A stretch of 63,843 bases of DNA, counting the filler, from Reticulomyxa filosa (lineage: Eukaryota > Protista > Foraminifera): the NCBI GenBank assembly GCA_000512085.1. It is 18 parts of 18 records of this genome, joined end to end, with 100 filler letters (N's around TTAATTAATTAA, not from the genome) between each part and the next. Parts side by side here need not be neighbours in the genome. Positions count along the whole stretch, not along the records: positions 19,659 to 24,782 come from ASPP01006821.1; 17 more parts are not named here. One strand, given 5' to 3'. Each line of letters starts with the position of its first letter. The first letter of the stretch is position 1. The notes under the pieces were generated by a model. That model was not told the origin of the DNA. It did no database searches and saw only the letters and a program-made list of their open reading frames with translations. The position numbers were made by a program, and so were the translations under genes. Positions 19,549 to 24,939 of the stretch are shown here, in pieces.

Positions 19549-20138
19549 GGGGGGGGGGNNNNNNNNNNNNNNNNNNNNNNNNNNNNNNNNNNNNNNNNNN
19601 NNTTAATTAATTAANNNNNNNNNNNNNNNNNNNNNNNNNNNNNNNNNNNNNNNNNNNNGGAAAACTCAGAGCTTTCAGGGATGTTGATGCTGATGGTAAT
19701 GATGATAATAATGATGAAAAGAATGAAGATAATGAAAGCGAAGATGAAATTGAAAATGGTCATCATGACAATTATTGTAATCATTCAAGCTACGGATTAC
19801 CTTGGGAATCTTGCCAATCTTTTATCCAATTGAACGGGATATTGTGCAATTTGGAGACGAATTTACAAATATTTGTCAACAAGGAGTGCCAGCGATGAGC
19901 AATGCTGGGAAAACAATGACTGAGCATTGATATTTAAGACGTTACTTTTTGCCATGTTTATTAATGTTGCCTCATTTCTAAACTTTGTACACAGTAAATG
20001 TTGAATTTGTTCGCACTTTATCTCATTTATGATGTTCGATTAAATCCAAAAAAATCTTTTATCAAAACAGTAATTACAAAACGAAAGAAAAAAGTGCATT
20101 CTTTTGTGCTATCCACAGTTTTCTTCATATAAGAAATG

Positions 20139-23100
20139 TTATTCTTTTAATAAGGCAAGAACGTTGGTATTTTTTTCCAAACGGTTTGCCATTTCTGCCG
20201 GTGTTTCTTTGAGCTATTTTATGTATGTGTCTTGTCTACGTTGGAAGATATGAACAAAAAAAAACAAGCCCAACTAGAGTTTTACTTTTCATCGACAACA
20301 ATTCACTCCAAATTTTAGAAGGTATCAACACACGTAAGCATTGCAATCGAGTCAAATCTCCATCGCTTTTGTTCATTAGGCTTAAGTGAATAAGATTGTA
20401 TCCTTCCCATTTTTCCTGGATGTACAACATTTGCACATTACATAAAATTCCAACAACAAAAAAACGAAACAAAAAACAAAACATTGTTTTGTGCGGTCAT
20501 ATTCCAAAAAGAAATGTCTGGAGACTTTGGAGTTAGCAACGTGATAATTTTATTGTTGATTTCTCTTGAGTTTTGAATAGCGAACATTAATGGAGTACAA
20601 GCATACTGTAAATATGTATTTTTTTTAAAGAAGAAAAACAGAGAAAATCTCATGAAAAAAATTAAATAAATTTTCCATGCATCTCAAACACGCAACTGCA
20701 TCTACAGTGCAAAGTAATCTTTGCCACGACTCACTGGACATGAGATCGTTCAATATGAATAAGCGTTCTTGCACATTGAGAAGAGGTTCAAAAAATAGCA
20801 AATGTAATAACGTTCCTTCATTCTGTGAAAAAATATACACAATAAATACACGTTGACGTGTAATATAAATGTATTTTAAAAATTAAACTAAAAGTGGGCC
20901 GGATTTTTGTTCCCAGAACACGGTATTAGTGCGGTAATCTTGCGGGATAAATTGTTCGATGGCTTGCTTAGAAAAACTGGAGTGATGCCATAATATTTCC
21001 ATTAACGGAGTGCACTTGCGCTTGAATGTAAAACAGATTCACAAAGTAGACAACAAAAGCCTTAGAAGCAATAACAATAACAATAAAAATATAAACAGAT
21101 ACAGGTATTTCATACGTATTTGTCTTGCAATTGAATATAATTTTCCCATGTCTTCTCTTCCGTAATCTTTGTTTTTAAAAAATTCACCATTGTGGATAAA
21201 TCAATACGAGAATTTTTCGCACCCAAGTGAATGCAGGACATTTGAAACTACAGTTGGTTTCAATGAGATAAATCATGTTACATATACAGAATATGCAAAA
21301 AAAAAAAAAAAAATAACAATTATAATAATGTTATTTGCTTGATTAACTTTGTTCAACGAGGTCCAAATTTGCGTGTCATTTTCCCATTCAGGAGGAACAA
21401 ACAGCTGAATTAATTGAATGGATGGCTGCACACTAAGTGCGGCCATCATAGGGAAGTTACCATAAATATCTGCTTCAGCCAATTGTTTCTTAACAACTTG
21501 AAGAGGAATGAATTTACCACTTTGTAATAACTCTTTGCAACAATGATATTGCAGATCGCCATGGTTGGCCATTTGTATCATAAAGTTGGCACCAGAGACT
21601 TCTTTGTGATTCAAAATAAAATTGGAAGATTGGAACTGCAAAGGATGGAATAGCATTAAGGGAGCCAAGGAATGATGACCAAAACCAGAAACTCGCAATT
21701 GAAAATCAAAAGAATTGATTCGAAGCTGTTGCAACAACCCGACAGTGAACTCTTCATGGCGTATAATTTCGTACAGTTGATGTTGTTGGTGTTTAAAGGA
21801 CGCCATTGAAGCAAGCAGCAATTGCACCTCACAAACAATGCTTTGTTCGTTTTGAGTAAAAATTATATTAAATTTAATATCTTTATATTCTTTTGGAATG
21901 GCAATTTCAAATTTCTGACTTCCAATAGTGGCTGAAAGATTGGAAGAAGTAGCAACCTTTTCTTCTGTCTCCGGATTATTTTGCTGTTGCTGTTGTCTTT
22001 GTTCAGTCTTTTTTTCAGATTTAATTTCAAAGCCATTTTTCACTCGCATAATTCGCAAACTGGTATTATGGCTCCCAACAACCTTAACAAAAGTAAGCAA
22101 TCCTTGATAAAAAATGCTCAAGAGTATCAAAAGTCACCTGACATCGAATGATGTCAATAATATGTGCCGACTTTGGAAAAGCTTCATTTCGGTATTCAGT
22201 TTGTGCTTTGATTTTGCACCGATCAAAAGTCTTGATCGGACCGCTTTCAAACAGACAGCCCTGACAGTCTTGAAAGATCGACTGCATCTGTTGTTGAAAG
22301 GGGTCATTTAATTCGTGTGCCCTTGCAATCAATTCATTCAAATATACATCAAAATCATACGCGTGTTTGGGATGGAATTCCACGTTATTACTTTTCAATT
22401 GGATTTGCAACAACTCCATCTCATTGAGTCGAGAGTGAAGCCCGTTGAGATCACTGTCTTGTCTCCACGCATGTTTGTCTTTGAATTGAGAGAGAATATC
22501 GGTATATTTCCAATGACAAATTTGTGCAAATACTTGTTCATTGTGATTAATTTCTTCTTTCAATTGCCTTTGAAATGAATGGATTTGCTTCAATGTCTGA
22601 GCATCACATAGATCTTTAATTTGTTGCCATTTGATTTGAGAGCCATTCCCCACTTGATCAAGCCAAACCAACAATTTTTGATTGCCCAAAACAAATTCTT
22701 CAACCCATTGCCAATCATTGGTGTGTTTAGACAATGTGTCTACATTCAACAATTGCTTGCATTGATCATACAATGCATCCCACATTTGTGATGGATCAAA
22801 CATCCAACATAAATTAAACATATCTGTGCTAAAATACTTCCGATCTTTGATCATTGCTTTTATTACTTTGCACAATGTTTTCATCAGTGTTGCACGTTCT
22901 TCCTCCAATGTGTTCTCCTTAATATACAACCACAATAACTCACTTTTGGATTTCTCTTTCATATATTCCAATGCACTTTCACGCATCTCCCGGTCTTTTT
23001 CATCCAAATACTTTCCATTCAGCAATAATTTCACACCTTCTTCATTTTGGTATTTTATTGCTAACTCAATGCATCATCCCACCTTTCTTTGCTCGGCCGA

Positions 23101-23640
23101 AATTTCTCTGATTCTAACAAGTAGCGCGCACATTTCACATTATTGACACTTGATGGATGGATCAAGTGGCTTAACAGATCACTCTTTTTTATCCGTCCCC
23201 GTCATTTGTCAAAAAAAAATTTATAGATATGTATATGTACGTATATAGTTTTATTACAAGTTTATGATTCATTTTTCTTTTTTTTTTTTTTGATGTAATG
23301 TACCAGAAAGCCACGAAATTCCACTGCTTGTTGAGCTAGTATTTCTTTGTCAGGTTGAAATCTTTCTAATATATCCACAAATAGTTCTTCTTTTCTCTCC
23401 CACGCATAATCGCATGCATAAAACAGTAACCGCTCCTGTTAATAGACAAAGTAAATAGTTTTGCTTGGGTTGCGTTCCTCAATGTTTTTGTTTTCTTTTC
23501 ATCAAACTGCGCGTTGATCGTTGTCTGAGATTTTCTCAATTTCGAGAACTCGTTGTGCATATAATTTGTCCTTTTCACACCAATCAATTTTCTTTGTTGG
23601 TTTCTTCACGTCTTGTCTTCTGTCCGACGTCCAACACAGA
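20139..23640 (-). CDS. Ankyrin-like repeats + RelA/SpoT-like nucleotidyltransferase domain + C-terminal ankyrin-like repeats; multi-exon, two single-base frameshifts
   Basis: Central motifs GPIKTFDRCKIK, DIIRCQV, RVKNGF, YKDIKFNI, CEVQLLL and HQLYEIIR. Ankyrin-like units include LLFYACDY, ELAIKYQNEEGVKLLL, GNFPMMAAL, CTPLMEIL, GTLLHLL, CTPLMFAIQ, GYNLIHL and ETPAEMA. The stop is TAA at 20139-20141; the start is not located. Confidence 0.75.
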
Positions 23641-23965
23641 AAGAAATTACTTTAAGCGCATTCTAGTATAATTTAAAAAGGATAGAATGAAGAAAAAAAG
23701 ATCACATGTCCGCATTGTCTTTTTTTTCATCAGTTTTCGTTTGATATATTTTCTCCATATTATAGTTTTTTTCAGGACAGCAAGAAGGACCTTGAATTTT
23801 AAAAAATTGCACTGTCAAGTTAATTACATGGAAAAATGGCAACATAGACCTGCATTTGAGATGCAACTACAATTGAATGAGAAGAGAGCGAACAAGCAAG
23901 CACCGTTATTGAATCACCAAAAAAGCTCGTGCAAAAAAGAAAAGCGGATTGAATAATTAAAGAAT

Positions 23966-24756
23966 TTATTTTAAATTTTCTTGAGATTGTTTTAGTGTAG
24001 TTATAGTATCAACAACAGGCATGGAATAAGGCATAACCACACTATTTGATGGCATTGGTATGGCTTGATCCATGGCGTTCAAGAAACATCGACAAGCGGC
24101 AACTCTTAAAAGAGTATCATTAAGTTTTAATTTCTCTTCGCTTTCGTGGATGAGTTGTGTGTCCAGCTCAGGGCAATTGATGGCAGCCAAAGCAGTTTCC
24201 AAAGTGACCGCATTCAATACAATAGCAATGGCAATGATAGGAGAATGAAAATGATGAATTAAATCATCTAATATCCAAGCTCTTAACAAATCAACATCTT
24301 TTAAAAATCTGTTTTCGTTTGTTTATTGTTACTTATTTACCAATTTATATTTTTTTTCTCTCAAATATCTTGCACATTATTTATGTATTTGTATATGTAC
24401 ATATATAAATACATATGTAATATCAATCGACAAATATAAGCAATAAAATTACTTTTTAATTTTTCCATACGAGTTATTGACAACTCGATGTTTCTGAAGG
24501 TAATCCATGGTTATTGCGACTTCTGTTTTTTTGTAACTGGCAAGAGCGTCTTCCAAATCCATCTCTTGCATGCCCTTGACAACATCCAAGCAATGTTGCA
24601 TCTCTTTGGCCCCTTCGGGGTTCGAATTTTCCCCCCATTTTTCAGGTACTCAATCTCGACTTGTGTATCAAACGTGGTATTGAACCAATTGACTATTGGC
24701 TGCCAGTGTTTTTCATAATACCCTTCTTTTATTTTGTCAGGGTTTTCTGCTATCCT
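23966..24756 (-). CDS. ATP12: Probable ATP12 / ATPAF2 mitochondrial F1 assembly factor, 5'-partial
   Basis: YYEKHWQPIVNWFNTTFDT and WILDDLIHHFHSPIIAIAIVLNAVTLETALAA resemble the ATP12 'WDP..W' and 'KS.i.alal' segments. Intron at about 24299-24469. Confidence 0.55.
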
Positions 24757-24939
24757 TTTTTTTTTTTTTTGAGTTGAAGGGGNNNNNNNNNNNNNNNNNN
24801 NNNNNNNNNNNNNNNNNNNNNNNNNNTTAATTAATTAANNNNNNNNNNNNNNNNNNNNNNNNNNNNNNNNNNNNNNNNNNNNAATAATAATAACAATAAC
24901 AATAACAATAATAATATAAATGATAACAACAACAACAAC

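Follow-up and report, generated by a model that had tools for sequence, protein, structure and literature searches.

Among eukaryotes without plastids, Mesh1-type hydrolases are widespread, and synthetases are rare and scattered (PMC3153485, PMC10107265). RelA/SpoT (RSH) synthetases encoded in the eukaryotic nucleus are already on record (PMC3153485; bioRxiv 10.1101/2024.11.26.625400), such as divRel of Dictyostelium, fungi and diatoms (PMC3153485) and the N-terminal RelA_SpoT effector domain carried by fungal NLRs (10.1101/2024.11.26.625400). RelA/SpoT domains have also been described in phage polyvalent proteins (PMC5512222). Apk toxins are distinguished from ppGpp synthetases by three signatures, RYT versus AVR, GxN versus SxH, and YH versus IR (PMC12226406). 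In FaRel2, which belongs to the toxic small alarmone synthetases (toxSAS), the donor site comprises R64, K66, S70, K74, D90, G93, R95, Y128, E145 and Q147, and in FaRel2, RelP and Rel the adenine of the donor is stacked by the Arg of beta-1 (R64) (PMC11782079). Here we describe a gene of the foraminiferan Reticulomyxa filosa that is annotated as hypothetical protein RFI_08959 (ETO28171.1) and lies on the minus strand of a contig of 5124 nucleotides within the window, i.e., the whole stretch of 63,843 nucleotides.

Based on the fold, conserved site, family size, architecture and nearest relatives, the RFI_08959 product is predicted, with regard to its chemistry and gating, to be a cytosolic, hydrolase-less RSH-type ATP pyrophosphotransferase of an undescribed subfamily that is regulated by repeats, a reading that we consider reasonably probable. 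Since eukaryotic RSH synthetases have precedent, the family is not a new category. In the literature searched, most subscription journals being outside its coverage, neither the subfamily nor its set of motifs nor its foraminiferan expansion was found described.

According to structural modelling, the core of RFI_08959 is a RelA/SpoT synthetase-fold (SYNTH) domain that is closer to RSH enzymes than to other nucleotidyltransferases. Domain-level folds and alignments were obtained from database proteins, namely the NCBI model (P0001, in which 17 residues flanking the second of two frameshifts are missing) and an intact paralogue (P0005), whereas the exons and frame segments of the gene were searched separately and not as one spliced protein. 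An AlphaFold2 model built from 79 family domains (predicted local distance difference test, pLDDT, 84) had only RSH structures among its top 12 PDB matches (Z 11.0-6.2, VIA), the best other nucleotidyltransferase reaching 5.4. The top match was SaEAS (8vx3; Z 11.0, root-mean-square deviation (rmsd) 3.4, 145 residues aligned), followed by RelP (Z 10.6), RelQ (10.5) and Tas1 (10.4). The model of the intact paralogue ETO20660 (pLDDT 90.7) also matched 8vx3 (Z 12.4, rmsd 3.4, 165 aligned), while RelP and RelQ structures held the top ranks in Foldseek; the Foldseek and Atlas searches were consistent with the RSH fold proposed in the earlier note.

The same note had suggested a Pfam check, which turned out differently: no RelA_SpoT (PF04607) match above the cut-off was obtained for the pieces of RFI_08959 or for the 79 family domains, a single member of the 79 giving a sub-threshold match (E 0.09). 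A weak Pfam match to a TNT domain (E 0.03) was dismissed as chance. Neither a search of PDB sequences with the family profile nor tblastn against annotated phages and plasmids gave a significant match, and single proteins found nothing in prokaryotic genomes, in scans of a kind that detects close relatives only. Nevertheless, the N-terminal half of the domain alone retrieved 455 relatives (E<=0.001) among 1.84 billion representatives, and these relatives, the invariant catalytic-type columns and a fold search topped by RSH structures place the domain far above chance. No HD, TGS or ACT domain was found by Pfam in the gene, as had been noted before, or in its homologues, and the helical module upstream of the enzyme is not an HD hydrolase by sequence. 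NACHT and NB-ARC domains were likewise absent from RFI_08959 and from the 25 Pfam families listed for 52 homologues.

The observation of an RSH-like domain in a spliced nuclear gene is thus confirmed. Bacterial or phage contamination, or a chance resemblance, might be considered given that the nearest non-eukaryotic relatives are phage proteins, but it is refuted by nine spliceosomal introns at positions shared with paralogues, by at least 13 R. filosa records of the family (confirmed by name) on separate contigs, by eukaryotic neighbours and by further members in other foraminifera; its probability is practically negligible.

With regard to the active site, 86 full family domains were compared, whose pairwise identity to RFI_08959 is 28-55%. 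The catalytic Asp and the Glu of ExQ, which had been read from the single sequence as retained, are invariant (86/86), the Gln is kept in 81/86 and the acceptor Tyr in 83/86; all eight core residues, including the Mg-binding Asp, ExQ, the acceptor Tyr and the basic helix, are kept together in 78/86. The placement of Asp and ExQ relative to RSH enzymes is a profile alignment and not a residue-level superposition. A non-catalytic role of the domain, as a nucleotide sensor or scaffold within repeat proteins, would agree with the loss of the conserved beta-1 Arg and with a few degenerate members; it is very unlikely in view of the invariance of Asp and Glu and the retention of Gln, Tyr and Lys in 94-99% of the domains. 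One such degenerate member is RFI_15807 (L136:599-4200), which is full length with an intact frame and has lost the syn1 Lys, the acceptor Tyr and the His; it is a candidate pseudoenzyme regulator.

The motifs quoted in the earlier note are all present on the minus strand at the positions given there, and their run is interrupted, as described, by a frame change at the run of six A at 22109-22114. The one-to-one parallel with the canonical motifs holds only in part. In syn1 (RxKxxxSxxxK), both Lys are kept, the first Arg is replaced by Pro (76/86) and the Ser by Arg (82/86). The beta-2 Arg lies at D+3 instead of D+5, so that DxxRC stands for DxxGxR, and YxDxK and ExQFL occupy the places of GYxSxH and ExQxRT. 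In a profile alignment, the FaRel2 donor-site positions listed above read P, K, R, K, D, R, S/T/Q, Y, E and Q in the family. With Pro for the first Arg and DxK for the guanine-reading SxH, the domain is, by its sequence, not a canonical ppGpp synthetase. A rival reading is that the same fold serves a different chemistry, the remodelled site (Pro for Arg, Arg for Ser, DxK and RxKN) carrying out another Pol-beta-type reaction; this could be a nucleotidyl transfer with a protein or small molecule as acceptor, or the production of an oligonucleotide messenger, linear or cyclic. In three substrate-contact motifs the family departs from all characterised RSH enzymes, and the altered motifs are almost invariant in both the family and its phage sister clade. 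On the other hand, other nucleotidyltransferases reached only Z<=5.4 against the domain model, and a single Asp together with ExQ and a basic helix is the pyrophosphotransferase layout in established RSH enzymology, which leaves a different chemistry unlikely.

The affiliation of the domain was examined with 87 phage Apk/EAS-type domains (one of which matches SaEAS at E 5e-17), 12 canonical RSH domains and 19 phage virion-clade domains. The family profile matched the Apk/EAS set at 95% (E 3e-8), at 93% when the selecting motif was masked and at 86-95% in 12-sequence subsamples, compared with 0.4% (E 0.16) for the canonical set. In a scan of viral contigs, closer relatives were found as domains inside very large phage proteins, which were matched at 99% (E 3e-18), at 98% with the selecting motif masked and at 95% with the N-terminal part alone. 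This phage clade was selected by the syn3 pattern YxDxK, and its likeness in syn3 is therefore not independent; the lack of the syn1 Arg and the Arg at the Ser position, found in 19/19 of its domains, were not selection criteria. The top structural matches in BFVD were phage proteins of the same kind (A0A6J5Q8J2, A0A6J5KIV2), and the eukaryotic family grouped with the phage clade in the unmasked tree (Shimodaira-Hasegawa-like approximate likelihood ratio test, SH-aLRT, 95), a grouping to which alternatives were not rejected. Judging from these comparisons, the domain falls within the superfamily on the Apk/EAS side, its closest resemblance being to the phage virion-protein clade; it was likely gained once from the phage or bacterial toxin side and then multiplied. 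By the features tested, it is outside the canonical, Apk and NLR-linked families, and RSH-like by fold and core residues.

Each of the described systems shares part of this pattern. Like the family, RelA/SpoT domains of phage virion or polyvalent proteins have no Arg before the syn1 Lys, an Arg at the Ser position, DxxR, YxDxKxN and a late K..H..Y; the phage copies reside in biochemically uncharacterised virion proteins of about 900-4000 amino acids (aa), whereas the eukaryotic genes are spliced, multiplied and provided with an upstream helical module and repeats. Apk1/Tas1, Apk2 (MuF) and the exported alarmone synthetases (EAS), the group that includes the top structural match SaEAS, share DxxR at syn2 (Arg at D+3, RYT type), RxKN, ExQ followed by an aromatic or aliphatic residue, and a C-terminal KxxxHxxYxxxR helix. 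They differ in retaining RxKxxxSxxxK (62/87 phage examples), YxGxN (79/87) and ExQFHT (87/87, the last by selection), for which the family has DxK instead of GxN in syn3 and F-L instead of F/Y-H in syn4. Moreover, Apk/EAS enzymes act as antibacterial toxins that are secreted or injected and come with immunity genes; neither an export domain nor an adjacent immunity or hydrolase gene was seen in the RFI_08959 model or at the paralogue loci L136-L143, no signal peptide is present in the model, and a hydrophobic N-terminus occurs in only 3/50 homologues. Canonical Rel, RelA, RelP and RelQ (PF04607) have in common with the family the fold (Z 9-11), the catalytic Asp, ExQ, the acceptor Tyr and two Lys, and are set apart by SxH, DxxGxR and ExQxRT; the family has no HD, TGS or ACT domain and matches their profile poorly. 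The tRNA-pyrophosphorylating toxSAS (CapRel 7ztb, FaRel2) resemble it in fold (CapRel Z 8.8-10.7), in having helices N-terminal to the core and, in concept, in regulation in cis; R64, S70, G93 and R95 of toxSAS correspond to P, R, R and S/T/Q, and no pseudo-zinc-finger antitoxin was seen. Fungal RelA_SpoT NLRs and divRel are likewise nuclear genes of eukaryotes in which an RSH synthetase is linked to repeat sensors, but are detected by Pfam RelA_SpoT, and the NLRs possess a NACHT/NB-ARC switch, whereas the family lacks an NTPase switch, escapes Pfam and carries its enzyme in the middle of the protein.

Some observations concern the viral relatives themselves. The phage clade (L144:3705-9659; L145-L148; a subset of L150-L187) consists of proteins of about 900-4000 aa with the same remodelled motifs, L144 being an internal virion protein by PHROGs, and may represent a candidate clade of injected effectors in its own right. 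A link to Helicobacter polyvalent proteins was rejected, as the prophage member L188 groups with Apk and not with the phage YxDxK clade. Weak structural matches to giant-virus proteins were present in BFVD (Hyperionvirus A0A3G5A8M0, E 1.4e-3; Fadolivirus A0A7D3R1N1, E 0.11), and giant viruses are a possible route between the prokaryotic and protist copies.

The family extends beyond R. filosa, and the sampled domains form one clade. The check proposed earlier, a count of paralogues and fused domains, gave the 13 or more R. filosa records mentioned above and fusions to ankyrin, WD40 and RCC1 repeats. Members were also found in the EukProt datasets of Nonionella stella and Bolivina argentea, which we take to be transcriptomes; on that assumption the family is expressed. 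Another member lies on a metagenomic contig of 65% guanine-cytosine (GC) content with GT..AG introns (L132:9370-10720), a composition unlike that of R. filosa (about 34% GC), which points to at least one non-foraminiferan eukaryote as a source. This contig is present in many samples, and the Gln of ExQ is replaced there by Ala across an intron. In addition, a Tara Oceans contig of 29% GC (L135:1075-13382) encodes an intronless member of 1642 aa adjoining an ankyrin protein of 2238 aa. Among 52 full-length homologues, 29 contain Pfam Ank_2, and single matches to WD40, RCC1, ZZ and C1 occur in others. In P0035 of Nonionella stella, the domain is fused to ankyrin repeats and to a WD40 propeller of coronin type, a combination suggestive of a connection with actin, and P0011 has two enzyme domains flanking an ankyrin array.

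Ankyrin-like repeats on both sides of the domain had been reported for RFI_08959, and repeats are indeed present on both sides. On the N-terminal side, Ank_2 was found by Pfam on the corresponding part of a paralogue. On the C-terminal side, the last 120 residues of ETO20660 matched ankyrin folds with middling scores (Z 6-7). Beyond them, RFI_08959 has five units of 41-47 aa, one per phase-0 exon with boundaries matching those of paralogues; Pfam gave no ankyrin match on the RFI_08959 exons, and the five units have no significant ankyrin match alone. They are homologous to units whose fold in the paralogue model resembles ankyrin repeats and, having no match of their own and about 44 aa instead of 33, are termed ankyrin-like. 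Exon shuffling of the repeats, which phase-0 exons would permit, was rejected because paralogues hardly differ in how many there are and how they are ordered. A fusion to RasGEF was also rejected: ETO35982 (L138:71-2243) and ETO20660, two near-identical R. filosa records that both belong to the family, are labelled 'Ras guanine nucleotide exchange factor' by NCBI, a label for which Pfam gave no support.

By analogy with RSH enzymology, Mg2+ would be coordinated by the Asp together with the Glu of ExQ, the triphosphate of ATP would be bound on the basic helix, and pyrophosphate would pass to the 3'-OH of an acceptor that stacks on the conserved Tyr. A partner or ligand may be bound by the repeat or propeller modules, which are variable and would thereby activate the enzyme, and the output could be a stress or defence response through a messenger, ATP drain or a block of translation. 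As an enzyme without a hydrolase, potentially toxic and present in many copies with exchangeable binding modules, it is probably held off until the partner or ligand binds.

The absence of the guanine-reading SxH and the ancestry on the Apk side favour an adenine acceptor, and from sequence an adenine nucleotide or adenine-ended RNA appears somewhat more likely than GDP or GTP. Within the pyrophosphotransferase reading, an adenine nucleotide is the foremost candidate without commanding a majority, an RNA 3' end is a possible second, and a guanine nucleotide is a little less probable again. The guanine share corresponds to an ordinary (p)ppGpp synthetase in a eukaryotic response of the stringent type, as for divRel of Dictyostelium, fungi and diatoms, and its probability is already contained in the preferred reading. 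Such an enzyme would be in line with the RelP/RelQ structures at the top of the Foldseek ranking, with EAS-branch enzymes that are ppGpp-only or guanine-preferring, and with the divRel precedent (PMC3153485). It is rendered quite unlikely by the missing SxH and the canonical profile match of 0.4% (E 0.16), and dozens of members with swapped partner domains would be unlike a housekeeping source of alarmone.

Several points weigh against the preferred reading of a repeat-regulated pyrophosphotransferase from the Apk/EAS side. The beta-1 Arg that stacks the donor adenine is Pro in the family, and donor binding must therefore differ from that in FaRel2, RelP and Rel. Support for the grouping with the phage clade falls to only 89/89 in the masked tree, neither a grouping with Apk nor one with canonical RSH is rejected in approximately unbiased (AU) tests (p 0.26 and 0.18, respectively), and structure scores do not separate the Apk type from the RelP/RelQ type (Z within about 1). 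The closest R. filosa paralogues have almost the same number of repeats, in contrast to hypervariable immune receptors. It was also reported that EAS enzymes include ppGpp-only members (PMC12691689) and that swaps of syn motifs did not switch Apk2 (PMC12226406), so that motifs cannot predict the product in this branch.

The gene model of RFI_08959 (Table 1) was derived by direct reading of splice signals. It comprises 10 exons with 2862 coding nucleotides (nt; about 953 codons), from an ATG at 23758 to a stop codon at 20139-20141, and nine GT..AG introns of 61-120 nt, of which the eight downstream ones are all in phase 0. The NCBI model ETO28171.1 spans only 22986-21113 and is incomplete by comparison. 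The stop end at 20139 agrees with the extent given in the earlier note, whereas the gene begins about 120 nt beyond the other end given there, 23640. As the paralogue RFI_15807 aligns to 23540-20272, the whole span is a single gene. NCBI models of the paralogues (L136-L143) often run through introns or end early, and the true paralogue genes have the same repeat-per-exon tail as RFI_08959.

Table 1. Features of RFI_08959 (positions in the window; for motifs, the position at which each starts).
Feature	Position	Strand	Basis
Whole gene RFI_08959	20139..23758	-	Splice reading and match to paralogue RFI_15807
Probable first exon with ATG, followed by an 86-nt phase-2 GT..AG intron	23706..23758	-	Sequence inspection only; the model is least certain here
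Exon 2, encoding a charged N-terminal segment	23508..23619	-	Splice reading; P0006 and P0013 match weakly
Exon 3 (132 nt, phase 0-0), with a single helical unit	23304..23435	-	Boundaries shared by paralogues
Exon 4 (1836 nt), encoding the ankyrin-like units of the N-side, the helical module, the SYNTH domain and the first C-side repeats; contains both frameshifts	21348..23183	-	
Frameshift 1, one base short relative to paralogues	23068..23070 (approx.)	-	Paralogues in frame here
All-helical module upstream of enzyme, with family-conserved WxW motif	22470..22970	-	Family consensus
RelA/SpoT SYNTH-fold domain	21750..22465	-	Relatives, fold and conserved columns; coordinates computed
SYNTH motif GPxK	22242	-	
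SYNTH motif Arg	22221	-	
SYNTH motif Lys	22209	-	
SYNTH catalytic Asp	22155	-	
SYNTH motif Arg following the catalytic Asp	22146	-	
Frameshift 2, in a mononucleotide run of six bases; paralogues have one base fewer	22109..22114	-	
SYNTH motif RxKN	22046	-	
SYNTH acceptor Tyr of YxDxK	21887	-	
SYNTH Glu of ExQ	21830	-	
SYNTH His	21782	-	
SYNTH Tyr	21773	-	
First C-terminal ankyrin-like units	21348..21620	-	Homologous part of paralogue model against ankyrin structures, Z 6-7
Repeat exon, 44 aa, phase 0-0	21116..21247	-	Paralogues
Repeat exon, 44 aa, phase 0-0	20889..21020	-	Paralogues
Repeat exon, 42 aa, phase 0-0	20697..20822	-	Paralogues
Repeat exon, 41 aa, phase 0-0	20483..20605	-	Paralogues
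Repeat exon, 47 aa, phase 0-0	20275..20415	-	Paralogues
Last exon, capping half-repeat and stop codon	20139..20213	-	

Both one-base frameshifts are private to RFI_08959, and the second, which the NCBI model conceals within a false intron, falls inside the enzyme domain. The paralogue loci covering these sites (seven for the first or the second among L136-L142, plus L143 in part) are in frame there, and programmed frameshifting was rejected on that account. The family could be real and this particular copy a pseudogene with two genuine frameshifts in a birth-and-death family, a reading that concerns RFI_08959 only and is compatible with any of the others. Besides the two frame changes in exon 4, frameshifts of their own in 3/8 of the examined paralogue loci and the lost active-site residues of RFI_15807 speak for it, and a look-up of sequencing runs listed none from RNA. 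However, all frame changes seen (two in RFI_08959 and five in paralogues) lie in or beside base runs, no in-frame stop or nonsense codon was seen in the matched exons of the paralogue loci, all nine splice-site pairs and all catalytic residues of RFI_08959 are intact, and a similar apparent one-base break occurs in the neighbouring gene at a five-base run (24638-24642). The pseudogene reading is thus possible but doubtful. The placement in base runs, the in-frame paralogues and the break in the neighbouring gene favour homopolymer errors of the assembly, which was presumably built from 454 reads; both frameshifts are quite likely to be such errors rather than signs of decay, and the gene is probably intact in the organism.

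Two further features flank the gene. On the minus strand, the neighbouring spliced gene at 23966-24782 is interrupted by the contig end; its likeness to an ATP12 mitochondrial chaperone was not confirmed by Pfam, PDB or Atlas searches. On the plus strand, an open frame rich in Asp, Asn and Glu (19659-19900) enters from the edge of the piece with a stop near 19898, and is probably the 3' end of a convergent gene.

The present family comprises hundreds of sequences that are missed by Pfam and share a conserved active site, which opens the question of cytosolic alarmone synthesis in eukaryotes without plastids to direct tests. The family further delimits an RSH subfamily whose donor and acceptor site is remodelled in a way common to uncharacterised phage virion proteins. 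It is conceivable, although we give it a minority chance, that foraminifera and some other protists have turned a phage-type alarmone-synthetase domain into a large family of sensor-coupled enzymes, which would produce a new cytosolic nucleotide messenger or RNA modification, distinct from ppGpp and ppApp, in an immune or stress pathway parallel to cGAS/OAS. If the repeats gate the enzyme, the family would add a new type of effector to the eukaryotic sensor-enzyme systems.

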